Shown here one piece after another: positions 28,329 through 61,640 of a stretch of 64,000 nucleotides of DNA. The notes below the pieces were generated by a model that ran no database searches, was not told the origin of the DNA, and worked only from the letters and a program-made list of their open reading frames with translations. The stretch spans positions 62,001 through 126,000 of the forward strand of contig CDMY01000311.1 in the NCBI GenBank assembly GCA_001179505.1, read 5' to 3'. How positions within the stretch are numbered: the stretch's first letter is position 1; each line of letters opens with the position of its first letter. The stretch is from Vitrella brassicaformis CCMP3155 (taxonomy: Eukaryota > Protista > Chromerida). Position numbers and translations under genes: made by a program.

Positions 28329-29993
28329 ATGGCTCTTCAGGCCTCGTCGTCGACCAGCAGCTTCTCTTGCTGCTGGGACTATTTCAAGTTCATGACAACG
28401 TAAGTGATGACGGTCCGTCACTGTCCTTGTAGCTCTGATTTCTCACACAAATTGGCTTCTGTGCTCTTCACCTGCAGCCCCGCACACCAAAACACCGACC
28501 AAGAAGCCCTCACGGAGGTCAGTGACTGATCAACACAGAGCTCGGTCATCGACATTGTTTAACATGATCTGTGCTTGCTGTATTGTTTGCAGGCCGTCCC
28601 TCGCCATCGACCGGTGCTGCCGGAGGTGCCGCGGCGCCATCGCCGTTGCCCTCGGCATCGCCCGCATCTGCCCACCGAGGCGCCCCGACGGGCTCGACGG
28701 CAGCGGCCACAGACACATCCCCAGCCACAGCCACAGCAAGCACCACAGCCAGCGCACCCCCAGCCGGCGATCACCGCCACCGCCCCTCCCCCTATCATCG
28801 CCCCTGTCCCAGCCCCCGTCCCCCCTCCCCAAAGGGCTATCGTGCCTGCCCCACCCCACCCCGACCGCATCACCCCACACCAGCGCGCCATCCGCAACCG
28901 CATCGTGCAGTTGATCGAGACGGGCAACGATGCAGCAGCGGGCAGCGAGGCAGTGCGCCTCATCCGCAACAACCGGGACGTCCCCCTGGCCGGAAAGGAT
29001 CTGTTCCGTCGGCTGGCTGCCTATGCGCGCCTCCTGCCGTCTGAGCAGAAGTTCCGCATCGCCACGGCCATCCTCGACCATCAGCCCGCGCTCGCCAACG
29101 AGATCGACGAGCACCCACACCAAAGCGGCCAGGTGGCGATCCACCACTTCAGCCAGTACCCGTTGCTATTCGACGGGCATCAAGAGGCGCTTCTGCGCTT
29201 GCTGGTGGCCAAGGGAGGGGCGGGCATCGTCAGCCTGCGGGACGACAACGACCGCCTGCCGCTGCACATCGCTGCCGCTTCCTACCACGACGACTGCACC
29301 ACAACGAGGTGGCTGTGCGAGAACGGGGCGGCGGTCGACATCAACACCCCCAACGGCGACAACCTCACCCCTCTCCGGCTCGACGCCGACAAGAACGACC
29401 CGGCCTGGGGGAGCCCGCTCTACCGCCGGCTGACGCTGCTGGAGTTCGGGGCATCGGTGGCCGGGGCGGGCGTGCGGCCACTGCCAGTGCCGCATCGGGT
29501 GTTGTGGGAGGAGAAGATCCTCGACGCCTACCGCCACCATCTCGAGTGGAGCCTCATCAAGCGCATCCTCGCCATTGCCACCACTGCCCTCGGCGCCCAG
29601 CAGATCCCCCTCCCTGCCGGTGTGCTGCAGCGGGTGCTGGAGATGGCGGTCCCACAACTCCCCACCATCGCCGACCCGCCCCTCTCCACCCGCATCAACA
29701 CGGCCCTCCTGGCGTTCCTTGACGCCGCCACGAGGGAGGACAGCCAGCGCGAGCTGAGGAGCGGAGTGGGGGGTTTCCGCTGCTTCCGCGCGCTGACGGG
29801 GCTGCGATCTCGCCCAGTCAGCCTGTGTACCGTCGTGAATCGCGCCATTCGCGACGAGGCGCGGCGGTATGGGCTGACCCTCGGGCGCATCAGGGGGCAG
29901 AGCAGCGATGCGGCCAACAACGGGGCTGGGTGGGACTGGAGGAGGCTGGGGGTGGTCAAGGAAGGGGTGTTTAAGCCGCTTTATCTGAGTTGA
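28329..29993 (+). CDS. Ankyrin-repeat-like protein with Pro/Gln-rich N-terminus
   Basis: Two short exons (28329-28399, 28478-28517) splice in phase into a ~1.4 kb exon containing DDNDRLPLHIAAAS...WLCENGAAVDINTPNGDNLTPL (ankyrin consensus). Confidence 0.75.
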
Positions 29994-41870: not shown

Positions 41871-41895
41871 AGCTCGCAGCTGTGACCGCGCGAAA
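41871..41895 (+). promoter_or_regulatory. AGCTCGCA motif plus an E2F-like GCGCGAAA upstream of the LHC gene
   Basis: AGCTCGCA at 41871-41878 and GCGCGAAA at 41888-41895, ~80-105 bp before the ATG at 41976. Confidence 0.45.
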
Positions 41896-41975
41896 GATCT
41901 AAGGCGTTGGACTCATCACTGCTCTACCAAGGCAGCCAGGGGAGATCCGGACACCGGCCAGGAGCAGCAGCAGTG

Positions 41976-42704
41976 ATGCGCCAGCTCATCTCCCTCGTCG
42001 TGGCGACCCTCTGCCTCGCTCACCATGCTGCTGCATTCGTCCCCTCCCCTCTTCTCAAGACCTCTTCATCACAGCCCCAGCAGCGGTCGTCGTCCCGGCT
42101 CACCCCCCAGATGCTGCAGCTGAAAGGCGAGGCGTCCACAGCGCTTCCCTTCCTTCGCAGGCCGCCAGCGCTCGACGGCTCGCTGCCCGGCGACGTGGGA
42201 TTTGATCCCGTGGGATTTTCCTCGCTCGACAAGAACTCTGACGGCAACCCGGGTTTGGATTTCTACTGGTTCAGGGAGGCGGAGATCAAGCACGGGCGGA
42301 TCGCGATGCTTGCCACGGCGGGGATCCTGTTTGTGGAGCTGGTGGGAACGATGCCCTTCTTCCCCTACCCCAACAAGAGCCAGATGGACGTCTTCTGGGA
42401 CGTCTACCGGGACAAACCCGCCCTGATCTTCTTCTCCATCATCATGATTGCCGTCATGGAGATCACTTCCGGATTCGCTATCACGGCGGGGCGCGAGAGC
42501 GGTCTGAGGGAGCCGGGCGACTTCAAGTTCGACCCTTTGGGCTTCGCCAAGAACAAGTCGCCCGAGGCCATGAAGACCATGGCCACCAAGGAGGTCAAGA
42601 ACGGCCGGCTGGCTATGCTCGCGGCGGCAGGCATGATCCTCCAGGGGCTCGCCACACACAAGGGGTGCCTGGAAAACCTGAGCTCTGCGCTCACGGGCAA
42701 GTAG
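41976..42704 (+). CDS. Light-harvesting complex protein (red-lineage LHC), intronless, bipartite plastid targeting
   Basis: Signal peptide ending AAA-F (ASAF-type cleavage); PGDVGFDPVG, REAEIKHGRIAMLA and KEVKNGRLAMLA chlorophyll-binding helices. Confidence 0.97.
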   Translation: MRQLISLVVATLCLAHHAAAFVPSPLLKTSSSQPQQRSSSRLTPQMLQLKGEASTALPFLRRPPALDGSLPGDVGFDPVGFSSLDKNSDGNPGLDFYWFREAEIKHGRIAMLATAGILFVELVGTMPFFPYPNKSQMDVFWDVYRDKPALIFFSIIMIAVMEITSGFAITAGRESGLREPGDFKFDPLGFAKNKSPEAMKTMATKEVKNGRLAMLAAAGMILQGLATHKGCLENLSSALTGK

Positions 42705-42999
42705 AGCGAGCGATGGTGTGTGTATGGATGGATGAAGGGCGAAAAGGGGGCCACGACAGATTTTCGAGAGTGCTGTTTTTGCTCGTGATATGATGGTGTA
42801 CACAGTCAGTGGGGGTGGGTGGGTGCTCTCGGGTGGTGGTGGTGGATTGATTGATAGCTGGTTTTGTCTGCGCGTGAGCGCGACTGACTGACTGACTGAC
42901 TGATGGACAATGAAACTCTCGATGAGACCGTAGTGCGCGCGCGCGATTGATGACAGAGAGAATTTTTCGCCTGTGAAATGACATGTCTTGGAAGCAAAT

Positions 43000-44550
43000 T
43001 CATTCACTCATCAATCTGTCCACACACACCAACACAACACGTTCATCGGTCTCTCCTTACCTCACGACATACACGAGCGAGCGCCGACCGACACTTCCTC
43101 CCATCCACCCAACACAAACAGGCAGATAGACAGAGACTCATGCAGGACCAACCTGACCTCGCTTGTTTATCTCTCCTGACATAAAGACTGACCGACGGAC
43201 GCAAAACATACCACCACACGCGCAACGCACACGAGAAAGCTTCAGTCGTTATGCACGCCCACATGCATTCAGGCAGGCAGGCAGGCAGGCAGTGAGTGCT
43301 TAAATAGTCAGTCAGTCGCGGTCACCGATAGAGCGACGCCTCCAGCTAGACACGCACGCACGCACGCACACGAAGGCACCGTATGGTATGCATGCATACA
43401 GGAGGGGAGGAGGAAAAAACATCTCTCTGGATGTGATATGTGATGTGATGCAGATCGATAGAACTCGTTCGCCTAAATCCCACACTTACGGCCTAATGGA
43501 TTATCATCCATTGCTCTCTCTTCACTTCTCTCTCTCTGTGCGACAGCCATCTGCCAGTCAGTCGGTCGATAGAGCCAGCCAGCCAAAGAAAACCGACGTA
43601 CGGGTGCTGTGCTGGTGAGACGAAAACCACAAAAAGGTGTACAATGCAATGCATGCACCGCAGACAGACAGACACCGATCAGACCAAGGAAAAGCAGGAA
43701 AAGCGGCCGATGCTGCAGACAGACAGCTAGGTATGTACTATAAAGCGCCCGAGGGCCCGTGTTGACCGGATGGGTGAACGACATTTGGCTGACTGCCCGT
43801 GGGTGAGGTGACCCAACCCGACTCATACATACAAATATGTATGCGCTGTGCTGTGCTGTGCTCGTCCCGCCCTCTCTCCCGCCCGACCACCCCACCCTCC
43901 TCGTTGACCCGACGGATGGGAAAATCGCCCGAGTGGCGTGGATGCATGCTGATCTATCTGCGCATCGCATGCAGGCACGCCACTCTCTCCGGCACCACAC
44001 ACGCTTACACACATGTACAGAGACACCGCACACGTAGACACACATGGATGCATCGACGGACATGAAACACACGTCTGATCAGCCAACCAAGCGACCGACC
44101 GACATACAGACACCAAAAACCTCTTTCTCTCTCTCCCCAATCAAGCTGACCTCAACCAACGAAACCCTGAGAGACTGCACCCACCCACCCTTGCCCCTCT
44201 CTCTGTCTCTCTCTGGTGGACACATTCGATCGAAAGACACACACGTGCTCAGCTCAACATGAAGGTCTGTCTGGCGAGAAAAAGAGAGATGAGGGAGGGA
44301 GGGAGAGAGGGAGGGAGGGGGGGCAAGAGGGACGATACAGCACAGCCAAGCTAGAGAGGCCGCAAGGATGGTGTGTAGGCATCGTGAGCATGTGTCAGGC
44401 AATGTGTGTACGTACGTATGAGCGTCGCTCAGTCCGGCAGGCCAGGCCAGGCCAGGCCGTTTACAGAAAGTAGTACGGGTAGTATGGAAAATTGAAAGCT
44501 CACTACGCACGCACACAACACACCAAGTCATGCCATGCATCCCATCCACT
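43000..44550. repeat. Microsatellite-rich intergenic/3' UTR spacer between the convergent LHC and secreted-protein genes
   Basis: Runs of CA, GACA, GGCA, GCAC and GGAG; no coherent coding exons. Confidence 0.55.
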
Positions 44551-44637
44551 CGTCACGCTAAGATGATGTCCTGCATACACACACACACAGACACTCGCGA
44601 GGTGTCCATGTGTATGCCTCTCTTTCTCTGCACTCAC

Positions 44638-47600
44638 TCAGCTGACCTCGGTAGCGGGTGGCCTGGGGTAGTATGCATTGGCAAACCTGTTGTCGTCCTC
44701 ATGGCCGCTGAAGGCGTGGCCAATACCGCCATACGAACCTGGCCGATCCATCACACGATCCATCCATGGACAGGACACGCGACAGATGATATGATGCGTG
44801 TGGTGTGCGTGGTTTGATATGCTGTCCGTGTTTGTTGTGGCTGAGCTGACTGATGCGATGCTATGTGGCTGGGCTGGCTGACCTTGGAATACTTCCTTTG
44901 GTGACTTTGGCAGGCACGCGCCGTTGTAGCATTTGGTGCCGTCGGGGCACTGCACCCACCGGCACTTAAAGTCCTCGCTCCCCTGCACACATCACATCAC
45001 ACGAAAACAGAGCACCCCACTCCCTCCCTCTCTCGCAGTCTGTGTGGGCTGGGCTGGGCTGGGATGTGCTGGGTGTGTGGGTGCCTTCATTTGTTTTGTT
45101 TGTACCATGTTGCCGACTTGGTCTTTGTTCTTGCATATCCCATAGGAGCACACCTGGTCGTCGGGGCACTTGACGAACTTGCAGAAGGTCTCGTTGTTGT
45201 TGGGGCCAGGCGGAGCGGGCGCCTGCTCGGCACCGACCTCTGCCACCACACACAAACACATACGTGCGGAACGGAATCATCAGCCAGCCATTCCATCCAT
45301 CCCATGCATCCGTGTAGAACACCCACCAGCAGCACTCAGCAAGGTGTTGGCCGCCAGCGACACAGTGCCTTTCGCCATGGCCTCGGATGCCGCGGCGAAC
45401 GAGCCCTCCTCCTCCTTAGGCCCCTCCGACTCGTCAGCGACCTCGTCGAGCTTCTTCTCGATCTTGTCGGCGTCGCTCTCCTTCTCGCCTTCGCCCTCCT
45501 CCTCCTTCTCCTTCTCTTCCTTCTCTTTCGCTGGAGCGCTGGCGCCAGGGATGTACTGCGAATAACCGCCTGCACCACCTGTGTAGTGAGTGCATGCAGA
45601 GAGGCAGAAGGAAGAAGACGTCATGTGTATGAGGAGGGGGGGGGGGGCCTTCGGGGTAGTTACCTTGTCCGCCCATGAATTTGCTGTAGTCGAATCCGCC
45701 TGCGCCGCCTGGCAATGCGAGCGAGAGAAGGAGGGTATCCATCGGATGGACGGATGGCTGTCTCGTCTCTCTCTCTCTCTGTGTATGGGGGAGGGGGTAC
45801 CTTGGCCGCCTTGCCCGCCCATGAACTGGCTGTAGTCGAACCCGCCTGGGGCGCCGCCGCCGCCAGTGTTGTTGCCACCTAATCACAGGTAGATAGACAG
45901 ACACAAAGACGCACCACCACACAACTAACCAATGGCTGAGAATCCGTGTCTGTGTCCGGTGCGCGGTCTGGCGTTAACACCTCCCATGTATGGTGCGGTG
46001 TAGGAGCCCCAGTCGAAGCCGCCCCCAGAGGCTGAGCCCCCGGTGGCCGCACCGCTGCCCTGGCCCGACCCGCTGCCCATCCCGCCGCCGGGGAACTGCG
46101 AGGCCGTGTCCTCACTCGATGCGGCTTCATCAGCCCTAAGACACACGAGAAACAAAGAAGGGTTTGAGAGGAAGCGAGAGAGTACGTCAGTCAGCCAGGT
46201 GTGATGTGATTGATGGTGTGATCTGATGTGCTGGTGGCTGTGCTGTGCTGTGGCTCACTCGGCCATCTGCACGGCTTCGGCGTCCTTCGGTCCTGCTCCC
46301 TTTTTCTTGTGCTTCTTCTCCGGCTGCGGTGCAGCTCCGCCCATGCCGACGGTGAACTGGCTGTAGTCATAGCCGCCATAGCTGGTGCCGCCAGAGCCCC
46401 CCTTCATGTACTGCGAGTAGTCCATGCCCCCATAGCCGCCGGTGCCGCCCTGGCCGGCCTTGGTGTACTGCGAGTAGTCCATCCCGGGGCCTGTGCCGCC
46501 GCCCGAGCCTGAGCCTGGCCCGCCGGAGGGCGACATGTAGCCCTTGGTGTACTGGGAGTAGTCGAAGCCGCCGGGTGCGCTCGCGCTGTCTTCTTTGCTG
46601 CCTTTCTTGGACCTGGAAGGCACATGAACGAATGAAGCACTGATGGATATGCTGCAACGGGTGTGGTGTGCCTGGTGCGTACACAAGGTTGGTGGTCTCT
46701 GGCGGAGTCTTTTCGTCCTTGCCATTGTCGTCCTCGGTGCTCTCACCGCCGCCGGCAGCGGGCTGGCCCCCCGCGCCGCCCATGAACTCGGAGTAGTCGG
46801 GCACGTACTGGCTCCAATCCATCCCGGGGCCGCCACCCATGCTGCCCGGACCTCCACTGACATGTCAAACACAGACAGATACACACATCACATCATCACT
46901 CGTGCGGATGTGGCGGGTGGGTGTGGTGTGGTGTGGGTGGTGTGCTGACCTTGCCCCGTGTGGTCCGGCCTCGCTGCCTCCGCCCCCGACTCCGCCAGTA
47001 CCGCCCCCACCGCCTCCCTTGGAAGTGTCGTTGCCCGACGGCGCACCGCCGCCCGTGCCGCTGCCCATGAAGTGGGAGTAGTCGGGGACGAAATGCTGCC
47101 AATCCGGAACAGCTGAGAAACGGACAGACGCACAGAGGGAAAGGGGGCGTCCATAGAAATCACGGATGGGGGTGTCTTTGGTGTGTGTTTGGTGTGTTCA
47201 GCTCGCCTCGCCCACCTCCTGGTGGTGGTCCGCCCTGGCCGCCTTCGGGCGATGGGGTGGTTTCCTCCTCGGCCTCGGGCTCGGCCGCCTCGCCCTTCTC
47301 CTTGGGGGCCTCGCCCTCCTCCTTGGGAGCCTGCTGTGCGAGAGTTGTGGCACTTGACACAGCCTGATAGGGACGGAGAAAGATGAGATGAGTGGATCGG
47401 GTGAGGTGTGTGTGTGTGTGTGTGTGATTCTTTGGTTACGTCCATGACTGCCATTCTGAGGCAGGCGACCTCCATCTCGGCACTGCCCACCTCACTGGGG
47501 CTGCACGGATCTGTCAAGTCAGTGGGAGCCATACACACCAGACACACACGACACGCACCCACATTGTCTGATGGCTTCTGACTGACTCTTGTACTTAACA

Positions 47601-48185
47601 CAACTGAGTGACTCCCTTCCGTCCGTCCGTCCCACTCACTCTGCCTACCTTGGACGTCTGCAAGCGTCATGGGGATGCGTTTCGCCCATGCGTTTGTGAG
47701 AATCCACCTGTTGAAGCTGCCACGGTGACACGCAGCGACCACCGCTGGGTAGGCCGTCGGCTGCACAACACAACACAACGCAACGCAGACAAGGCATGAA
47801 TGCCTTGCTTGTATGTATCGCTAAGCGCATGCATTACCACCACGCTGCACTCAGCAAACACGAGGTCCACGGCCTCTGCAGCTGCACCGCACCGGGTGAA
47901 GACGTCACAGACATCAATCACACACAGTAAGTAGCGTCACACACATTGTTGTGTCTGTCTGTGTGTCACCCACCACCCTCGAAAGAGGCTCATTGGCTCA
48001 CCGGTTTTCGGCTCTCTGCTCTTCATCGCCGCCTTGCGGTAGTCCTTGGGCACGTACTCGCCGAACTCCTTGGGCGACATCTCGCCGTGGCTCTTGGCCG
48101 AGTACTCGGGCATCGAAGACACCAACTCGGTGGCACCGGATGTGGCAGAGGGCGCCTCACCTGCCACACACACACCGACACTCAG

Positions 48186-48219
<34 letters not shown>

Positions 48220-51200
48220 GAGTGCGTTGCATGGTTGCGTGTGAGCGGCTGGGTGGGTTTAGGAGGTGGGTATGGTGTCGTACGTACCTTCTGATGTGTC
48301 TGTGTCGATGGTGCGTGACTTCTCTGCCTGTTGCCTGAATGACTCCGGGACGTAGGCGCCCCAGTCGCTGGCCGACAGCTCGCCGTGGCTGCTGGCGCTG
48401 TAGCCAGCTGCAATCCATCCATCCAATCATTGCATCACATACGCGTGTGTGTGTGTGTGTGTGTCCGTGTACCTGACTGCTCTTGTGCTCCAGAAGTCTC
48501 GACGGCCATGGTGGCGGACGACTTGTCGGCTGAACACAAAGACAGACACCAACGCACATATATTTGTAGACACGATAGATGTGTTTGTTGTTCTTTGTTG
48601 TCTGTCTCATGAGTGACGTCAGTCAGTCAGTCAGTCACGTGTGTCGCTTATTTACTTTTCCTGCTGGCCGCGGCCTTTTTCCTGTAGTCGGCGGGCACGT
48701 ACTTGATCCAGTCGGCCGTCGGCAGCTCCCCGTGGAAGTCCTTGCCGTACTCCTTGGACAACAAACTCGTCCCTGAAGACAGACACAGACATAGAGCGGG
48801 GGATGCAGGTCTGTCTGTCTGTCTCCCTGTCTGTCTGTCCGTGTGGGTGTCGGTGTGTATGCGACCTGGAGGGCCAGCGGGGTTCTCGTGTGTCTTCTTT
48901 GCGGCCTCTCTGAAGCCTGGCGGGATGAAGTTCTCGTACCCAGGCATCTCGCCGTGGTTGCTCATACTGTAGCCACCTGTGTGTGTTAACGAGTGTGTGG
49001 ACAGAGAGCATTTGTGGCTGTCTTGGTGTCAGTATGTGTGTGTTGCGGTGGGTACCTGCCTCGCCGCCGCCCATGGGTGGCTGCTCGGGCTGCTCTGGCT
49101 GAGCACCAGTTGCCCCGGGGGCCTGACCCAATGCTGCGCACCGCACACGCATTTACACACACACTCATCCGTAACACACAGGGTGACCGACCGCTGACAC
49201 CGTACCAAACATTGAAGACGGCCCCCCGCCGTAAGTAGGGTCTTCGTGAGTCTTCTTGGCGGCCCCGCGGAACTGCTTTGGGACGAAGTTCTCGAAGCCA
49301 GGCATCTCGCCGTGGCTGCTCATGCCGTATCCACCACCTACACAGACAGACAGACAGACAGACAGAGGCACAGACAGGTATAGAACGGCTCGTACGAGTG
49401 GATACCTGGCTGCTGCTGTTGCTGAACCGCTGCACGTGAGCGACAACAAAGAAGAGAAGAACAAGAAGAAGACAGTCCTTCTGTGTGTGTCTGTGTGTGT
49501 GTGTGTGTGTATGTGTGTATGGGTGAGCGCTGCGTTGCGTACCCAACATGGATGGAGGGCCAGCGGGGTTCTCATGTGTCTTCTTTGCCATGTCCCTGAA
49601 GCCCGGCGGGATGAAGTCCTCGTACCCAGGCATCTCGCCGTGGTTGCTCAGACTGTAGCCGCCTGAAGAAAGATGTCAGTGCGGGTTTGTGTGTTGGGGG
49701 GGGGAATGTGTGTGTTGCGGTGGGTACCTGCCTCGCCGCCGCCCATGGGCGGCTGCTCGGGCTGCTCTGGCTGAGCACCAGGTGCTCCGGGGGCCTGACC
49801 CAATGCTGCGCACACACACACAGACAAAAGACCCATTCACCGACGTGTGTGTGTGTGCAGAGATCTCTCAGACCCTCAGAGCAGGTGACCTACCCAAGAT
49901 TGAGGGCGGGCCAGCGGGGTTCTCGTGTGTCTTCTTGGCCATGTCCCTGAAGCCTGGCGGGATGAACTGGTCGAAGCCAGGCATCTCGCCGTGGTTGCCC
50001 ATGCCGTAACCACCTGCACACAAAGAGATGCATCCGAATGAGGGCGCTCCCTGTGTGCCGGCTGAGTGAGGTACCTCCCGGGAACTGCTGCTGGGGCTGC
50101 TGAGGTTGCTGCAACAGCACACACACACACAGGCACACACACGCACACACACTGACATCAGAGAGAGGACATAACGACACACACATGCACAGCAACGCAC
50201 CTGTGGCTGCTGTGGCTGCTGCGGCTGTTGCGCCTTTTGGGGCTCCTGGGCGAAGAGGCGCACTCTCATTGTGGTGGGTGAGGGCCGGTCCACCGTCAGG
50301 TCGTCCAACAGAGACTCGGAGCTCCATCCCTAGCACACATACACACAGATACAAACACAATAAATGCATCTCTAGGGGGGNNNNNNNNNNNNNNNNNNNN
50401 NNNNNNNNNNNNNNNNNNNNNNNNNNNNNNNNNNNNNNNNNNNNNNNNNNNNNNNNNNNNNNNNNNNNNNNNNNNNNNNNNNNNNNNNNNNNNNNNNNNN
50501 NNNNNNNNNNNNNNNNNNNNNNNNNNNNNNNNNNNNNNNNNNNNNNNNNNNNNNNNNNNNNNNNNNNNNNNNNNNNNNNNNNNNNNNNNNNNNNNNNNNN
50601 NNNNNNNNNNNNNNNNNNNNNNNNNNNNNNNNNNNNNNNNNNNNNNNNNNNNNNNNNNNNNNNNNNNNNNNNNNNNNNNNGGGGGGGGGTTGGCGTCTTG
50701 TCTGTCGGCTCACTCACTCACCATTTCGTCACAGGCCTTGTCAGCCCATGGCTCGACGGTTAGTGCAGCAACGGCCCCGGTCGCGCACACATCGACACTG
50801 CAGACACACACACATGGATGGATGGATGGATGTGTCTATCTGGTGTGGTGTGTGCCTGTCAGACATTATTACCATCCGAGGTTTCGGATGGTAGTGTGTT
50901 TGGGGTGGCAGGTGCACTGTTTGCCGCTCTTATCGCCCGTGCAGTGGTGCTCCTTCCCATCCCCATGGCCGCAGCCGCAGCCTTGCTTCTCGACGGCCTC
51001 GATCAGGTTCACGGGCATCACTGCAGGCAGAGACACCACACACACACACACACACACGAAGTGAGGGAGGGAGGGAGAGAGGGTGGCGTGGGGCACCCAG
51101 ACTGACCGTCAGAAGCGTCGTTGAGGTAGTGTTTGTAGGCGTCGAAGAAGCGGTCTTTGTCGCCGTTGGTGGCGGCGTCCATCATGTCGTTCTGATACCG

Positions 51201-54200
51201 CTGAGCAAGGGACACAAACTGCTCCCATGACACCTCGGTGCCTGCACGACAGACAGACAGACAGACAGACAGAGGGGCATGTGTGTCGTGTGGGGGAGTG
51301 AGTGGTTGGAGGGTGCCGACCAACCGACCGACCCACCGATGAGTATCTGTGACGAGATTTCCTCTGGTGAGGGTTTCTCGTAGACGTCGACCTTGTATCT
51401 GCCTAGGTTGCCCAGATCCACCATGCGGGAGGTCTTGAACTCAGTGTACCTGTCCACCACACACACACACACACACACAGAGACATTGCTGAGTCGGCAC
51501 AAGTGGGTGTGTGGGTGTGTGCTGACCCTTCCTCCTCGCAAGTGCCGCTCTTGAGTGTGCCGAGGCTGAGGGCCAGCACGCGCAGGGTCACATTGAGCTG
51601 CAGACAGTTCTTGGCCACGATGCGGTAGGCAGGCACCACCTGACACACGAACGACACACAAGTACGCCGCAATGCACATACATGCCCTCCCTCTGTGTGT
51701 GTGTGGGTGTGTGGGTGTGTGTGTGTGTGTGGCTGTGACCTCGTCGAGTGGGTCGTCCATGCCGACGAGTATCATCATGCTGTCGAGGGCTGCGGTGGGC
51801 TGGGGGGCCGCAGATGACGTCGATCGCAGAGAGGGCCCTACGGCTGACGTAGTGTGTGTGATCAGGACACAATTCGGCACACAAGTATGGATGGATGGGC
51901 ACAGACGAGAGGGCGTGTGTGTGTGTGTACATTTCTTGGCTTGTCCGAGGAACTGCTTCCAGTCGTTGACGAACTCGTTCCATTTGGCATCTGCATGTGT
52001 GTCATGACACACGCATCGCATCCATCACCCATCCCCACACAGACAGACAGACAGACAGAGAATGGACTGAGTGTACGTAGCTGTCTGCATGGAAGCACAC
52101 ATATATACATGTTTTGTTGGAGAACTCGTTGGCCGCGTTGCCGAACTTGTCCCAGTCGAAGATCTCCTTGCCTGACACACCAAGAAGACAACACACACAC
52201 ACACACACAGATGAGGGCGGCTGGTGAAGCGGTGTGCACTCCGGTCCACCCACCAGATGGGTACATCGCCTTGGTGTCTTGGACCTCTGAAGTGTCGCCC
52301 TCGGGTCTGGTGTAGGTTGCCAGCTTGAAGTCACGACCTCCCAACCTGCACACACACACAGACACACACAGACAGAGAGAGAGACAGAGTCCACACCTGG
52401 TCGATTTGTGTGCATCAGGGTGTGGTGTGTTGTGTGAAGCGCACTTGACTGTGGTGTCTGTCGATGGCTCCGTGAAGCCCACGGCCGAGCACGGACCTGG
52501 CGCACACACACAACCAGGTGGGTGGCTCCCATGGTGGCTGGTGTCGGTATGTGTGTGCAGACCAGACCTCACCCTCATGGAAGACCCCCAGTGAGAGCAT
52601 GACGAGCTTCTTGGGCAGACACGCATCGCCGCACTCCTTGCCTGACACACACGGCGCACAGATGTTGGATGGATGGATGGATGGCAGCAGCCGCATGCAC
52701 CTGCACCTACCAACGATTCTGTGCACCACAATGCACTCATCGTCGGGCTCCTCTGCCACGTCTGCGTCCTCGGTGACCAGCGTGGTGGCGCCGGGGCCGT
52801 TCGTGTCGTCGTCTTTGTCGTGCTCGTGCTCGGGCAGCGCTGCACATCCAACAAACACACAATCCCACAGCACACACACAGACGAAGAGAGGGCGATGTC
52901 GCGACGCATATATATGCTATGCGACAGGGTGGTTCGGTTCGGTTCGTGTGTGTGCAGACATGTGTACATTCTTTGGCCTCGTGGACAAAGTGTGCCCAGT
53001 CCTGCTTGAACTTGTCGAAATTGGTATCTGACGCAGCGCAGGCAGCCACAAAGCAGCGAGCGTCGATGGCGCATGTGTGTAGAGAGAGATACCTACCGAG
53101 CTCTGTGTGTGTGTGTGCGCCTACCGTTCTTGGCGTTGCCGAGGAACTTTTTGGCTGCGTCGGTGAAGCGCTTCAGATCAGGCACGTCCTGCGGCTGTCA
53201 GTCACGCAACCACACACACATGGCCTGGCCCCCGTGTGGTGTGCATCTCTCTCCCTGTGTGGGTGGGTGGGTGGGTGGGTGTGATGTGATGTGTTGCAAT
53301 GCACCTGTTGGGTTTGTTCGACGAGTGTCTGTGTTGAGCCCTCCTGGTCGTAGACCTGCACGTAGTACACGCGAGAGGTGGCGTTGGCGAAACTGACGCA
53401 ACGCACCACCAGACCAACGCACACAACAGAGAGAGAGGTGTTCTTGTGAACACACATATGTGTGCTTGTGTCGGTCGGTGGTGGCTCACGATTCTTTGAT
53501 GAAGTCCTCAGAGATCAGCCTCGTGAAGCCCGCATCACGGCACGTGCCCTGACACACACATATACACATACACACAGGGGATGGATGGATGGAGAGATGG
53601 AATGGAATGCACCTCGCCGTGTGTCTGTGTGTGTCTGGGAGCGGAGTTCGTGTGGGTACCTTACCTGTGGTAGCATAGAGAGGCTTGCGAGTGTGGGCGG
53701 GAGGCAGGCCTCGACGCACTTGGCGCCAGAGACCTTGACGTGCTTGTCGACGGCCACGTGCATCTTGGGACCAGTCACACGCATCACCGGCACACACTTG
53801 CTCTGCACAGCACACATGGCAAGGAGGGAAGGTCGGTGGCCGGACAACACAACAGACATACAGAGAGTGAAGAACATGGTGTGTGCATGCACACCTTGGG
53901 GTCCTCTGCGCGGAGGGCGAACAGCAGGTGGGGCACGGCTGCACGCCACATAAGAGAGAGAGATGGTCAGTGAGTGGTCCGACCCACCGCACTCCATCCC
54001 ACTGACTGGTAGAGATTAGATACGTGTGTGTGTGTGTGTGTGAGGGCATGCGATGCGATGCTTGGCGTACATTTGTATGCGTTGTTGACGAAGTCCTTCC
54101 AGTCGGACACAAACTGATCCCAATCCACATCTGCCAGACGGACAGCCACACACACGCACACACAAGCAACAATCATGCACAGTCGCATGGCATGGATGGC

Positions 54201-54719
54201 GCCTCGAGACACACTTAACTTACACACACACGGATGCGCCTCTCCCCCCCTCCCTGCCTGCGTGTCCCTCCCTCCCTCTGTCTCGTCGGCGGCGCACCAC
54301 ATGCACCTCACGTCGCAGCGCACCGACGCCGCCTGTCTGGAGGTGTCTGTGTCTGCCTGGCCTGCACATACCCTTCTTGGTCTCATTGAGGAAGTGGTGT
54401 GCGGCGTGGAGGAACTTGGTGAAGTTGAGCTGCTTCTGCTGCGGCTGCTCGGGCTGCTCCCCCATAACGGGCTGGTCATTCTGCAGCCGCCGGAGGTGAT
54501 CTCCATCTGCAGACACGCACCGCCCACACGAGGCACATGCACACACACACACACGAGCATCTCGCTAGATAGATGCATGTGTTGATTGCATGTATGTAGT
54601 GCGACCCCCGTGGTTGCCTCACCCTGTGTGTATGGCTGTTGCTGGTGCGCCTCACTGGGCAGTGGTGACGCCGTGAGTGCGAGGATGGCGCCACAGAGGC
54701 AGAGGGCGAGAGATGGCAT
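44638..54719 (-). CDS. Very large secreted modular repeat protein (probably one gene, ~40 exons)
   Basis: Signal peptide MPSLALCLCGAILALTASP at 54719. A chain of short exons follows, with repeated Cys domains, HGEMP repeats, Gly-rich DYSQY repeats and C4C repeats; stop at 44638. Continuity across the 50381-50680 gap is supported by matching phase (DEM|GWSSE). Continuity across ~47400-47950 is less certain. Confidence 0.7.
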
Positions 54720-54909: not shown

Positions 54910-57599
54910 ATGCTCCCATCAGTCTTCCTTCCCCCCCTCCCTGGCAGCGTCCCTGCATCACAGGGGGAAGATGAAGAAGGTCAGGAGGAGCATCCGCGGC
55001 GTGCGTCCGATGAGGGCCCCGTCCTCCCTCTTCCCTCGTCCAGCCACACCAACAACCACACCCAGATGACCGTCGACACGGTACACACCACGGGCGGGCA
55101 GTATCGGCGGTCGTCGGCGCCTGCGCTCTTCTATGAGCGGCAGAAGTGGGACGCCGACTCGCCCAAGTCGTTGATGGAGCTGACTAAGGAGGAGCAGGAG
55201 CAGCTGTTGAAGTATGGTTACCCCACGGACAAGTACGAGCCGGACAACGAGCAGGACCGGCTGGCCTGCACCATGACGTATGGCATACTCGACTCACCAC
55301 CAGAGGTACTGTACACAAGAGCGAGCGATACACTACCCTGTCTGTTTGTTTGGATGGATGGATGGATGGATGGATGGATGGACGGCATCACGGCTGGCAG
55401 GAATGTTTTGTGAAGATATGTGAGATCGCGTGCAAATTGCTCAAGGTCCCCAACGCGAGCATCAACATCATCATGAAGGACACACAGGTCTTCTTCACAG
55501 GTAGGTAGGGAGGCAGGCGGGAAGCAGGGGCCGGGGAAGGGGAGGAAGCGGTCTCTACTTCTCTGCAAACCAATACACTAACTACTGCATGTGTTTATTT
55601 GATCGATGGAATGGTTGCCATGCCTGAGCTCAGGAAACATCCCAGGAGGCGAGGAAAGAATCATTCCAAGAGGCGAGTAAGGCCCTTCTCACTTGACCCA
55701 TCTCTGTGCGAGATTGTTCCATCGACCCATCTGTCCACTTTTGCAGATCTGTCTGGTGCGTCCCAAATTGCCGCCATGGCCACTTACACATGCGTGTGTC
55801 GGTGTCTCTGCCTGATTTTCATCCATTGGTTGCCAATGGCTGGTCAGCACTCACACCATCAACTATCGCGAGCCGCTGCTGCTGTACGACTTGCCGTCCG
55901 ACGAGCGCTTCAAGCACAGGGCATATGTCTCGGGCGACCACCAGCCACACATGAAGGTCTATCTGGGGGCACCCATCACCACCTCGGAGCACCACAACAT
56001 CGGTTAGGGCGTGGACAGACAGACAGAGAGAGAGACAGACAGACCCCCGCGCTCCGCCCACTCAGGTGCGTTTTGTGCGTACGACATCAAGCCAAGGCCT
56101 GACCTGGAGCAGAATGAAGACATCAAGGCAACCGCGGGGACACCTAGACAGGCCCGTGGATCCGTGGATCTGTCAATGGCTGCATTCTCTCTCTCTCCCG
56201 CAGACGCTGATGGAGTATTTCGCCATAATGGTGCGCGACCAGCTGGAGCTGCGGCGGCTGGCGCACGCACACCTGGCCGCCCTGCAGCAGAAGGGCGAAC
56301 TGTTAGAGAAGCACCAGATGGTGGTCGAGGTGCTCGAACAGGGCGTGGAGAGCGTGCTGTCTCCTTCCGCCCTGCTCATCCAGCGACTGAAGAATGAAGC
56401 CACCAGACAGTAAATACACGCGGCCCGGGGCACCGCACGTTTGTATACTAAGTCAAGTGACTTGGTCACAGGTATTCCTTTCTGGCCTTGGATGCGGTAC
56501 GCTTTGTCTTGGCGGTAGTGTCGTTCGCTTTGCTGCTGGACTCGGCCATCGACGAGGGCGGCCGGTGGGACTATACCCTCGCCGCCACACTCTACGGCAT
56601 CATCTTTGTGAGCACACAAACAACACAAGGCCGACCCGCCGGCCATTCGTTTGTTCATCGGTGGGTCTGTCCTGTCTGGGTCTTGACGAATGTCAGGTGG
56701 GCGTGTCATTTGGTGTGTGCAAGAGTGTGCTGGCTCGTCTGCGGTTGCTGAAGGAGATCAAGCGACAGCGGACACACGGGAGCAGGTCTTTTTTCTGGCG
56801 GACGCTGCGGCTGGGGTCCCGGCTGGCTTTGGGGTCCCAGAGCTGGGGGCACGACGAGGAACAGCCTCAGGTTCCTGAGGCTGAAGCGAGGAAGGTCGAC
56901 ACAAAGGACATCGACACTCTAGAGGTAGGTGAGGTCCGCTGTGTGGACGGATGGATGGAAGCATGCATGTCTCTGCACACGAATGCAGGAGAAGCTGGAG
57001 ACATGTGAGAGGCAGCTGCTGGAGGCCAAGGCCATGGTGTGGACGGCGCTCCTCGAGGACATGCCATCGGTGTTTGTGCTCTTCTGGATCATCGACTGGT
57101 TTATCATCAGCAAAAAGGTCCGCGCCTGCACTGCAGGCAGACGATAAACAGAGTCTGGTCAGATCCAATACTCCCTCTCTCTGTGTCTGTGCGTGTCGTT
57201 TGTTGGGCTGACGAACTGACTGGCAGGACAGCGAGGAGGTGTTCTCCCGTGGCCTGATGCTGCACCTGGGTGCGGCGCCGCTGCTCCTCGCTCTCCTCTG
57301 CAGCGCCCTGGCCTTCGGCTTCAAGATGTTGCTCGCATTGCGGTACTTCGAGCTCAAAAACGAAAAGGAAGAGGTGCGTGGAAGACCAGCTGCCCAGCCG
57401 GAACGACACAGCACCACACAGAGACATCCATCCATCCATCCGTCCATGCATCCGTCCATCATGTGTGTGCTGTATGTATCTATGGGTGGCGAATGCAATG
57501 CAGCTGCGTCACGAGCTGTTCAGCGACTACGACCCGTCCAAGCTGCAGCTGTCCGAGATACGCATGCGCAAGGAGGGGGAGGCCAAGAAGACGGCCTGA
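54910..57599 (+). CDS. GAF-domain protein with coiled coil and C-terminal multipass membrane region
   Basis: EPDNEQDRLACTMTYGILDSPPE|ECFVKICEIACKLLKVPNASINII...HTINYREPLLLYDLPSDERF...YLGAPITTSEHHNIG|AFCAYD matches the common bacterial GAF consensus. It is followed by QLELRR and about 4 hydrophobic helices; stop at 57597-57599. Confidence 0.8.
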
Positions 57600-59545: not shown

Positions 59546-61604
59546 CTTCGGTCGACAGATCTCGCCACCTTGCACCGGGAAGTGAAGCGGTCGTGGAGAA
59601 GAGAGGGAGAGAGCTGTCGAGAGCCAAGTTGAAGGGTTTTGCGAGATCGCAGGGTTTCAAACCCTGGTTTGCGAGAGGAAAAGGATGAGAATGCAGCGCT
59701 CCTCGTGTGTGCATCCGCGTCCCTCATACGGCTTTGTGCCGTACCAGCCCGCTGTGTACCACCCCATGCCCCCCTTGCATGCCTTATCTGGAGCGCCGGC
59801 GGCCGCACTGCCCATGAGAGGCTTCTACTACCACCCGCCGCCGCCTCCATACCCCCCTGCTGGCTGGAGCAGCTTCAGCGCCCACCCGAAGCCACGCCGC
59901 ATGGTCCCTCCCACCACCAGAAGGGCTGCCCAGCACCCTCCCATCGCCGCATCGATGCGGCCACACCATCGGCAGCCAGCACAGCCACGGGAGGCCATCG
60001 GTTATGTCGGCCGGGGCCAGCAGGGGTCAGAGAAGGGAGAGGGGATGGGATTCGTGTATGCATGTTGCGGCGGCCAGCCGCATCGCCGGGAGAGGGAGAG
60101 CGCGGCGGAGCTCGTCGTCGGGGAGGAGGAGGGCATCGAGGAGGCTTCGGTTGACAGATCTCGCCACCTTGCACCGGGAAGTGAAGCGGTCGTGGAGAAG
60201 AGAGGGAGAGAGCTGTCGAGAGCCAAGTTGAAGGGTTTTGCGAGATCGCAGGGTTTCAAACCCTGGTTTGCGAGAGGAAAAGGATGNNNNNNNNNNNNNN
60301 NNNNNNNNNNNNNNNNNNNNNNNNNNNNNNNNNNNNNNNNNNNNNNNNNNNNNNNNNNNNNNNNNNNNNNNNNNNNNNNNNNNNNNNNNNNNNNNNNNNN
60401 NNNNNNNNNNNNNNNNNNNNNNNNNNNNNNNNNNNNNNNNNNNNNNNNNNNNNNNNNNNNNNNNNNNNNNNNNNNNNNNNNNNNNNNNNNNNNNNNNNNN
60501 NNNNNNNNNNNNNNNNNNNNNNNNNNNNNNNNNNNNNNNNNNNNNNNNNNNNNNNNNNNNNNNNNNNNNNNNNNNNNNNNNNNNNNAAGGATGAGAATGC
60601 AGCGCTCGTCGTGTGTGCATCCGCGTCCCTCATACGGCTTTGTGCCGTACCAGCCCGCTGTGTACCACCCCATGCCCCCCTTGCATGCCTTATCTGGAGC
60701 GCCGGCGGCCGCACTGCCCATGAGAGGCTTCTACTACCACCCGCCGCCGCCTCCATACCCCCCTGCTGGCTGGAGCAGCTTCAGCGCCCACCCGAAGCCA
60801 CGCCGCATGGTCCCTCCCACCACCAGAAGGGCTGCCCAGCACCCTCCCATCGCCGCATCGATGCGGCCACACCATCGGCAGCCAGCACAGCCACGGGAGG
60901 CCATCGGTTATGTCGGCCGGGGCCAGCAGGGGTCAGAGAAGGGAGAGGGGATGGGATTCGTGTATGCATGTTGCGGCGGCCAGCCGCATCGCCGGGAGAG
61001 GGAGAGCGCGGCGGAGCTCGTCGTCGGGGAGGAGGAGGGCATCGAGGAGGCTTCGGTTGACAGATCTCGCCACCTTGCACCGGGAAGTGAAGGAGCTGTG
61101 GAGAGCCAAGTTGAAGGGTTTTGCGAGATCGCAGGGTTTGAAACCCTGGTTCGCGAGAGGAAAAGGATGAGAATGCAGCGCTCGTCGTGTGTGCATCCGC
61201 GTCCCTCATACGGCTTTGTGCCGTACCAGCCCGCTGTGTACCACCCCATGCCCCCCTTGCATGCCTTATCTGGAGCGCCGGCGGCCGCACTGCCCATGAG
61301 AGGCTTCTACTACCACCCGCCGCCGCCTCCATACCCCCCTGCTGGCTGGAGCAGCTTCAGCGCCCACCCGAAGCCACGCCGCATGGTCCCTCCCACCACC
61401 AGAAGTGCTGCCCAGCACCCTCCCATCGCCGCATCGATGCGGCCACACCATCGGCAGCCAGCACAGCCACGGGAGGCCATCGGTTATGTCGGCCGGGGCC
61501 AGCAGGGGTCAGAGAAGGGAGAGGGGATGGGATTCGTGTATGCATGTTGCGGCGGCCAGCCGCATCGCTGGGAGAGGGAGAGCGCGGCGGAGCTCGTCGT
61601 CGGG
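59546..61604 (+). repeat. Tandem array of a 576-599 bp unit (at least 3 near-identical copies, interrupted by an N gap)
   Basis: The unit marker AAGGATG(AGAATGCAGCGCTC) recurs with its ATG at 59685, 60284 (cut by the gap), 60591 and 61167. Copies differ by a few SNPs and a 23-bp indel. Confidence 0.9.
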
Positions 61605-61640
61605 GATTTGATTGTCATCTTCTGAGATGAACCATTCTCG

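Follow-up and report, generated by a model that had tools for sequence, protein, structure and literature searches.

The question raised by this locus of the chromerid Vitrella brassicaformis CCMP3155 is whether a long chain of minus-strand exons makes up one gene for a giant secreted protein, and what such a protein might build. The chain lies in a 64,000-nucleotide stretch of contig CDMY01000311.1 (NCBI assembly GCA_001179505.1; positions 62,001 to 126,000, forward strand), which is referred to as the window and to which all coordinates refer. An initial annotation, made from the sequence letters, had described at 44638-54719 a signal peptide and four modules (repeated helix-pair plus cysteine (Cys)-domain units, seven HGE(M/L) repeats, a glycine (Gly)-rich region with D(Y/W)SQ(Y/F) motifs and two C-x4-C-x5-C-x4-C repeats) and had proposed a building block of the cyst or sporangial wall or of a matrix. 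We find one transcribed nuclear gene of 49 exons, encoding 1707 amino acids (aa), and discuss its product as a candidate extracellular structural protein. The gene had already been annotated as a hypothetical protein; new here are its exon structure, the resolution of an assembly gap, an orphan domain in four units, an extra Cys module, a unifying aromatic motif and the recurrence of its repeats in uncultured protists.

Chromerids are free-living photosynthetic relatives of apicomplexan parasites. A literature search revealed no paper naming a Vitrella wall or sporangium protein. The part of the chromerid genome paper covered here contains a COWP-type Cys-rich domain as its only wall-related item and does not discuss this gene (PMC4501334). 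The gene is a transcript-verified, conserved candidate, the modules of which can be expressed and tagged separately, and it defines three elements without family assignment: an alpha/beta unit of about 150 aa and two aromatic repeats. Both repeats are also found in secreted proteins from uncultured protists, so that knowing where the Vitrella protein is located or how it assembles would also give an annotation to a group of environmental 'hypothetical' proteins. Should the protein not be structural, it would be an ordinary lineage-specific orphan.

One transcribed gene of 49 exons

Spliced alignment of the transcript contig L004 (7973 nt, JGI 3300017148) with the window showed 100% identity without mismatches in 48 blocks. 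All its junctions are GT-AG introns of 61-392 nt. The window itself is eukaryotic, with short GT-AG introns enriched in (CA)n and (TG)n and a guanine-cytosine (GC) content of about 0.58. The 5' end of L004 lies 74 nt upstream of ATG 54719, so that the 5' untranslated region (UTR) reaches to at least 54793, and the transcript joins every module in one frame from this ATG to the stop at 44553, which confirms the single exon chain assumed before. The coding region (44553-54719, minus strand) with its 49 exons and 1707 aa corresponds to L004 minus its one retained intron (45980-45879); 22 of the 47 internal exons are of phase 1-1. The start of the earlier extent is correct, but its end at 44638 resulted from an open reading frame (ORF) that was read through the donor at 44647. 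The coding sequence ends with exons 48 (44738-44647) and 49 (44570-44553).

The NCBI annotation shows a single minus-strand gene with the same start and stop and a product of 1722 aa without Pfam assignment. The difference to the transcript-derived 1707 aa is a 45-nt exon-choice difference within 44553-54719. Alternative splicing of the retained intron was considered as its source and ruled out. This intron, intron 42, is the only one of the 48 that is retained in L004. Its retention ends the L004 ORF at 1486 aa (aa 1469 plus 17 intron-encoded residues), and the resulting product would lack the last motifs of the Gly-rich region and both C-terminal 4-Cys units. Downstream of the retained intron, the L004 frame runs to the stop of the NCBI model. 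An ab initio dynamic-programming model of splice sites and codons also gave the same minus-strand chain from ATG 54719 to stop 44553. Several of its small exons and one frame were wrong according to synonymous and non-synonymous counts against a related metagenome contig (L001, see below), and the transcript was used instead.

That the locus contains two or more genes, or that the transcript contig is chimeric, is exceedingly improbable. The 3' end of L004 is merged with the convergent transcript of a light-harvesting-complex (LHC) gene and one intron is retained, which would fit a faulty assembly, but the 48 GT-AG junctions, the continuous frame and the lack of any unspliced intergenic block between modules speak against it. 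The ab initio model gives the same chain, and NCBI independently models one gene.

The related contig L001 is an ENA metagenome contig (ERZ893784, k147_1923462, 2831 nt) that is colinear with positions 51205-47344 of the window, introns included, and about 86% identical. It carries all three ORF fragments returned by a profile search with the HGE units and points to an uncultured organism closely related to the sequenced Vitrella strain. Exons are 94.8% and introns 85.8% identical between the two, the exon indels measure 21, 3 and 3 nt, and the ratio of non-synonymous to synonymous differences per site (pN/pS) is 0.25 over 14 exons. The exons are under purifying selection and represent real, constrained coding sequence. 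Exon 47760-47649, for example, displays five synonymous and no non-synonymous changes in the transcript frame. The window contains seven HGE units and L001 five, with a difference of 686 nt; the copy number of the HGE array therefore varies between close lineages.

Intron 21 (50330-50721, minus strand) contains an assembly gap, a run of N at 50381-50680 between poly-C flanks. On the 5' side a GACA-rich sequence follows the gtgagt donor, and the 3' side is TG-rich and leads to the acceptor. L004 joins 50722 to 50329 and thus splices exon 21 (50797-50722, ending in phase 0) straight to exon 22 (50329-50201, starting in phase 0). L001 is continuous over the C-rich tract; at the gap site it has about 38 nt, compared with 300 N plus 33 nt in the window. 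Since L004 splices across the gap and L001 is continuous, the gap reflects a short homopolymer problem within an intron and leaves the coding sequence untouched; the 300 N stand for no more than a short C-rich tract.

Secretion and module organisation

The first 24 aa (54648-54719, minus strand; MPSLALCLCGAILALTASPLPSEA followed by HQQQ) form a predicted signal peptide. It has the highest hydropathy of the protein (Kyte-Doolittle over 19 residues, KD19, 1.77; next highest 1.56) and small residues at positions -3 and -1, and the claim of a signal peptide on the first ATG looks genuine by these features. The ATG at 54719 is both the first ATG of the transcript ORF and the NCBI start, and the stop-free stretch upstream of it holds no in-frame ATG. 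A hydropathy scan revealed no transmembrane (TM) segment, and the C-terminus, DIILA, shows no KDEL. The sequence after the signal peptide is acidic and glutamine (Gln)-rich and does not resemble a plastid transit peptide. The mature protein has about 178 kDa, an isoelectric point (pI) of 4.9, nine N-x-S/T sequons and 30 Cys, all of which lie in modules with conserved spacing. With a signal peptide on its true start, no anchor or retention signal, the 30 Cys in conserved-spacing modules and the nine sequons, the protein qualifies as soluble cargo of the secretory pathway, and its proposed secretion stands.

The module map, with all features on the minus strand, begins with a Gln/proline (Pro)-rich linker (aa 25-55). 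It is followed by four units of about 150 aa, each planned as two helices and then a beta-rich part with four conserved Cys. U1 (aa 56-207, exons 2-7, 53305-54438), delimited by alignment, and U2 (aa 208-365, exons 8-13, 52254-53194), which has an acidic insert, are 33% identical. U3 (aa 366-516, exons 14-18, 51337-52171) keeps two of the four Cys and is 28-29% identical to U1 and U2, so that pairwise identities among these three span 28-33%. U4 (aa 517-678, exons 19-22, 50201-51241) spans the gap intron and is divergent, with eight Cys and 15-21% identity to U1 and U2; it keeps the invariant columns F, A, F, A, C, L, C, G and R. Its end is overlapped by the first 43 aa of a Gln-rich stretch (aa 636-690). 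The helix-pair plus Cys-domain repeats noted initially are thus present as four units, but several of the Cys at exon ends were not real: at the ends of helix exons they arise in raw ORFs by read-through into the intron GT and are absent from the protein, in which the real Cys lie in the beta part.

AlphaFold2 was run on the single units U1 and U2. The model of U2, with the other three units as alignment, reached a predicted local distance difference test score (pLDDT) of 64.6, with about 80 in the core, and a predicted template modelling score (pTM) of 0.57, and displayed the element order H-H-E-E-h-E-h-E-E. U1 showed the same order at lower confidence (pLDDT 56.4). No fold match to these models was found, neither by Foldseek against the PDB (best E 0.31) nor by VIA-align against 48,161 chains (best Z 4.0).

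The HGE(M/L) array (aa 690-1062, exons 24-34, 48002-50013) comprises all seven of the repeats first described, four canonical and three divergent, with interleaved spacer exons (LGQAPG...GGGEA twice, VQQQQQP and DKSSATMAVETSGAQEQS). Among the canonical units, identity to the first one is 64-82%. Y, H, G, E, P, R and A are invariant in the units, with H7, G8 and E9 found in seven of seven. In 2000 shuffles of the protein, 0.03 HGE[ML] strings were expected, compared with the seven observed.

The array is followed by a hydrophobic 4-Cys module of 76 aa (aa 1062-1137, exons 35-37, 47440-47881), delimited by transcript exons. With six synonymous and one non-synonymous changes against L001 it is the most constrained stretch measured. 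An acidic Pro-rich linker (aa 1138-1187, exon 38, 47216-47363; E 22%, A 18%, P 16%) leads to the Gly-rich region (aa 1187-1516, exons 39-45, 45533-47112; Gly 31%), and this in turn to an acidic Glu/Lys-rich stretch (aa 1517-1594, 3' part of exon 45, 45327-45532; E 24%, A 18%, K 13%). The 76-aa module and the two acidic linkers were missing from the initial annotation. The D(Y/W)SQ(Y/F) motifs reported for the Gly-rich region are indeed there, six being observed and 0.0 expected in the same shuffles; eleven are found in the wider form D[YW]xx[YF], all of them as D[YW]xx[YF][MTV]. The two C-x4-C-x5-C-x4-C units at the C-terminus (Cys 1613-1629 and 1645-1661, exons 46-47, 44883-45239) were likewise recovered (two observed, 0 expected). 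The protein ends with a tail of 35 aa (aa 1673-1707, exons 48-49, 44553-44738) running to DIILA and the stop at 44553. Within the window, these repeat motifs are confined to this gene.

A related aromatic motif was found in three of the modules. In helix 2 of the folded units it reads D-W-D-Q-F-V-S-D-W-K-D-F-V, N-F-D-K-F-K-Q-D-W-A-H-F-V and K-W-N-E-F-V-N-D-W-K-Q-F-L; in the U2 model, NFDKFKQDWAHFV lies in this helix (residues 27-43) at a pLDDT of about 80. Exons 39 and 40 of the Gly-rich region contain D-W-Q-H-F-V-P-D-Y-S-H-F-M and D-W-S-Q-Y-V-P-D-Y-S-E-F-M, and divergent HGE units contain D-W-I-K-Y-V-P-A-D-Y-R and D-W-G-A-Y-V-P-E-S-F-R. Position 2 of the Gly-region motif is Y in eight and W in three copies, and position 5 is F in six and Y in five. 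The conserved feature is therefore the aromatic character and not the phenol group.

Relatives, precedents and possible role

Pfam scans of ten exons and of both spliced parts gave nothing significant, and those of the C-terminus (both exons and the 238-aa part) detected only the sub-threshold matches FOG_N (0.044), DUF7107 (0.084) and EB module (0.16). Neither the unit profile nor the C-terminal part matched any sequence in the PDB. Across the Pfam, PDB sequence and fold searches no catalytic or known binding domain was detected, in agreement with the earlier view that the architecture lies outside named families.

A profile search with the HGE units among 1.84 billion representatives returned seven proteins only, namely the three L001 fragments and four further proteins (P0004-P0007). 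A word search with P0006 returned only P0008, and word searches with the Gly-rich exon and with a 1468-aa protein (words from the first 500 aa) returned nothing; these blanks are soft, since the annotated product of the gene itself was not returned by the database either. A scan of JGI metagenomes with six peptide patterns revealed no relatives, and a literature search for the motif strings gave unrelated matches only. Neither an annotated full-length homologue nor a Chromera orthologue was found by the HGE profile search, the word-based searches or the JGI peptide-pattern scan.

P0004-P0008 are uncharacterised environmental protist proteins without Pfam assignment, from Tara/MERC and JGI metatranscriptome contigs. 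The GC content of these contigs ranges from 0.41 to 0.54, their samples of origin differ, and the dinoflagellate spliced leader is absent from them. P0004-P0007 share one half of the HGE unit, G-Ar-x-x-[FY]-[VI]-P-x-x-Ar-R-x-A-A (Ar, aromatic; profile E 4.5e-8 to 4.5e-4), and P0006 also matches the HGE array in BLASTP (3e-5). P0006 and P0008 carry GG-[DN]-Y-Q-Q-Y-M repeats, comparable to D-Y-S-Q-Y-M of the Vitrella protein (BLASTP of the Gly-rich region against P0008, 3e-5). With five copies of the G-Ar core, eleven motifs of the [DN]-Y-x-Q-Y-M type and a signal peptide, the Vitrella protein belongs to the same aromatic-repeat group, which is proposed here. An N-terminal signal peptide is also present in P0005-P0008; P0004 is a fragment of 166 aa without one. 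In contrast to the Vitrella protein, P0005-P0008 (256-716 aa) have a C-terminal TM helix with a short tail, and the alpha/beta units U1-U4 have no counterpart in P0004-P0008, nor do the 4-Cys units or the H-G-E half of the repeat. The similarity covers short repeats only and does not establish common descent of the proteins over their whole length.

The short cytoplasmic tails of P0006, P0007 and P0008 behind the TM helix share R-x-x-V-Q-x-P-L-L / V-Q-T-P-V-I-M. This tail motif may be a sorting signal, and its sharing suggests that the three are a true family of type I membrane proteins.

Among described structural proteins, only partial precedents emerge by analogy. In Dictyostelium spore-coat proteins (such as SP75; C-x4-C-x5-C-x6-10-C) and in the avian eggshell-membrane protein CREMP (C-x4-C-x5-C-x8-C), the C4C module forms a disulfide-rich structural unit (PMC3068167). 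The Dictyostelium likeness proposed at first holds for the first two Cys intervals, but not for the third, which is x4 here, nor for the copy number, as long arrays face only two copies (exons 46 and 47) in Vitrella; no Dictyostelium spore-coat repeat family appeared in the Pfam scans of the C-terminal part. The coccidian GAM56 and GAM82 contain tyrosine (Tyr)-rich regions of 55-77 aa and are processed and thought to be dityrosine-linked (PMC2726925). They resemble the Vitrella protein in the signal peptide, in a Tyr-rich stretch that is delimited and comparable in size (75 aa in exon 41, 14.7% Tyr) and in the alveolate lineage. The Vitrella protein differs in being 3-4 times larger and in having Cys modules, and its motif Tyr is interchangeable with phenylalanine (Phe) and tryptophan. 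The coccidian analogy drawn earlier is weakened, as the high Tyr content is confined to this one stretch, the protein as a whole having 3.3% Tyr and Phe at six of eleven motif positions. No similarity to GAM56/GAM82 surfaced in the general database searches, which did not include a direct comparison with a GAM sequence.

The diatom protein AC3362 is Tyr-rich, modular and secreted and is located in the insoluble wall matrix (PMC4220933). Like AC3362 and the cingulins, the Vitrella protein is modular, repetitive, secreted and without TM segments, and has aromatic-rich domains; they are lysine (Lys)-rich and silica-associated, whereas it is acidic and Vitrella makes no silica. Plant glycine-rich cell-wall proteins and resilin likewise combine Gly-rich spacers with regularly spaced aromatics behind a signal peptide. 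This resemblance is one of composition only, as D-[YW]-x-x-[YF]-[MTV] differs from their GGY/GGX repeat.

From these features we infer, with about even chances of being right, that the protein serves a structural role in the wall of the cell or sporangium or in an extracellular matrix. After secretion it would act as a scaffold there. The many copies of the aromatic motif ([DN]-Ar-x-x-Ar-hydrophobic), helical inside the folded units and placed between Gly spacers in the C-terminal half, would permit multivalent self-association, and disulfide-bonded modules at both ends could stabilise or link the chains. Sites for oxidative or metal-mediated cross-links may be provided by the Tyr-rich exon 41 and perhaps by the invariant His and Glu of the HGE units. 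A bolder proposal, which we make tentatively and consider rather doubtful, is that the whole protein centres on this one heptad-like motif, often doubled as D-W-x-x-F-V-x-D-[WY]-x-x-F-[VM]. It would form a packed helix in the units, the core of the HGE repeats and exposed, Gly-spaced 'stickers' that dock in trans on the units or on each other to build a self-assembling extracellular network; the two sticker motifs, shared by proteins with signal peptides from unrelated uncultured protists, would then represent an undescribed, widespread type of protist surface or matrix repeat.

Several points weigh against a structural role in the wall or matrix. The wall is only one of several possible extracellular or luminal destinations, and the nearest sharers of the motif, P0005-P0008, are type I membrane proteins and not obvious wall proteins. 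The overall Tyr content is ordinary, and dityrosine formation cannot explain the motif in general, because Phe replaces Tyr at so many of its positions. The C4C-like units number only two, with a third interval outside the published range of 6-10. The missing fold match is weak evidence for a new fold, since the AlphaFold2 models are of modest confidence.

The same secretory features, the missing anchor and the low-complexity repeats containing Gly, Tyr and Lys would also suit a secreted adhesive or mucilage component that attaches or coats cells or sporangia without forming an integral wall layer. Tyr- and Gly-rich secreted diatom proteins were chosen as adhesion candidates, but the one that was localised proved to be a wall-matrix protein and not an adhesive (PMC4220933), and the acidic pI of the Vitrella protein does not favour an adhesive, which we consider unlikely. 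Its soluble, anchorless character is equally compatible with luminal cargo of a secretory organelle (extrusome, dense-granule or microneme-like) in place of the wall, and chromerids possess apical secretory organelles. Pfam and word searches revealed no similarity to a known cargo family, however, and low-complexity Gly/aromatic repeats are atypical of such cargo, which makes this destination quite improbable.

Two further possibilities concern the HGE array, and both seem improbable. As a polyprotein precursor, the protein would be cut into small peptides at dibasic sites, which occur in most HGE units and as KKHKKK in exon 41, just as smaller peptides are produced from GAM56 and GAM82 (PMC2726925). 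Of the seven HGE units, six contain KK or RK, and its position is constant among the four canonical units; 18 dibasic sites exist in total, and the exon-per-unit structure would fit. On the other hand, Lys pairs are expected in Lys-rich repeats, and KK lies inside the conserved R-x-x-A-K-K-T-H-E (in P0006, A-E-R-Q-H-K) and not at the unit borders. Alternatively, the invariant H-G-E, with Met and a second His in canonical units, might coordinate Cu, Zn or Fe in an extracellular metal-binding or metal-cross-linked protein. The invariance of H7, G8 and E9 and the 11 His and 17 Met within the 373 aa of the array point in this direction, but Pfam scans gave no match to a known metal-binding family, and P0004-P0007 have kept the aromatic-Pro-Arg half of the repeat only and not H-G-E.

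Neighbouring loci in the window

Only 190 nt separate ATG 54719 from the start of a divergent gene at 54910-57599 (plus strand), which encodes a GAF-domain protein of 568 aa; the two genes therefore probably share a very compact bidirectional promoter region. On the other side, an intronless LHC gene (41976-42704, plus strand) is convergent. L004 continues past its last exon as an unspliced stretch (41880-44552, minus strand; L004 1-2693 colinear with window 41880-44572), about 1.8 kb of which precede the part that runs antisense over the LHC gene. This stretch is either a very long 3' UTR overlapping the LHC gene or a merger of overlapping convergent transcripts by the assembler. The Logan contig L005 (ERR558149, 3000 nt) passes the LHC gene into the same spacer, to about 44320.

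An EF-hand gene is located downstream. At 28575-29993 (plus strand) the window contains an intronless ORF of 472 aa with a Pro/Gln-rich N-terminus and ankyrin-like repeats (LPLHIAAASYHDDC...NGAAVDINTPNGDNLTPL). At 59685-61625 (plus strand), across a gap at 60287-60586, a unit of about 200 aa (MRMQRSSCVHPRPSYGFVPYQPAVYHPMPP...GGQPHRRERESAAELVVGEEEG...) occurs three times, near-identical, in a long open frame, a pattern that stems either from recent duplication in tandem or from misassembly.

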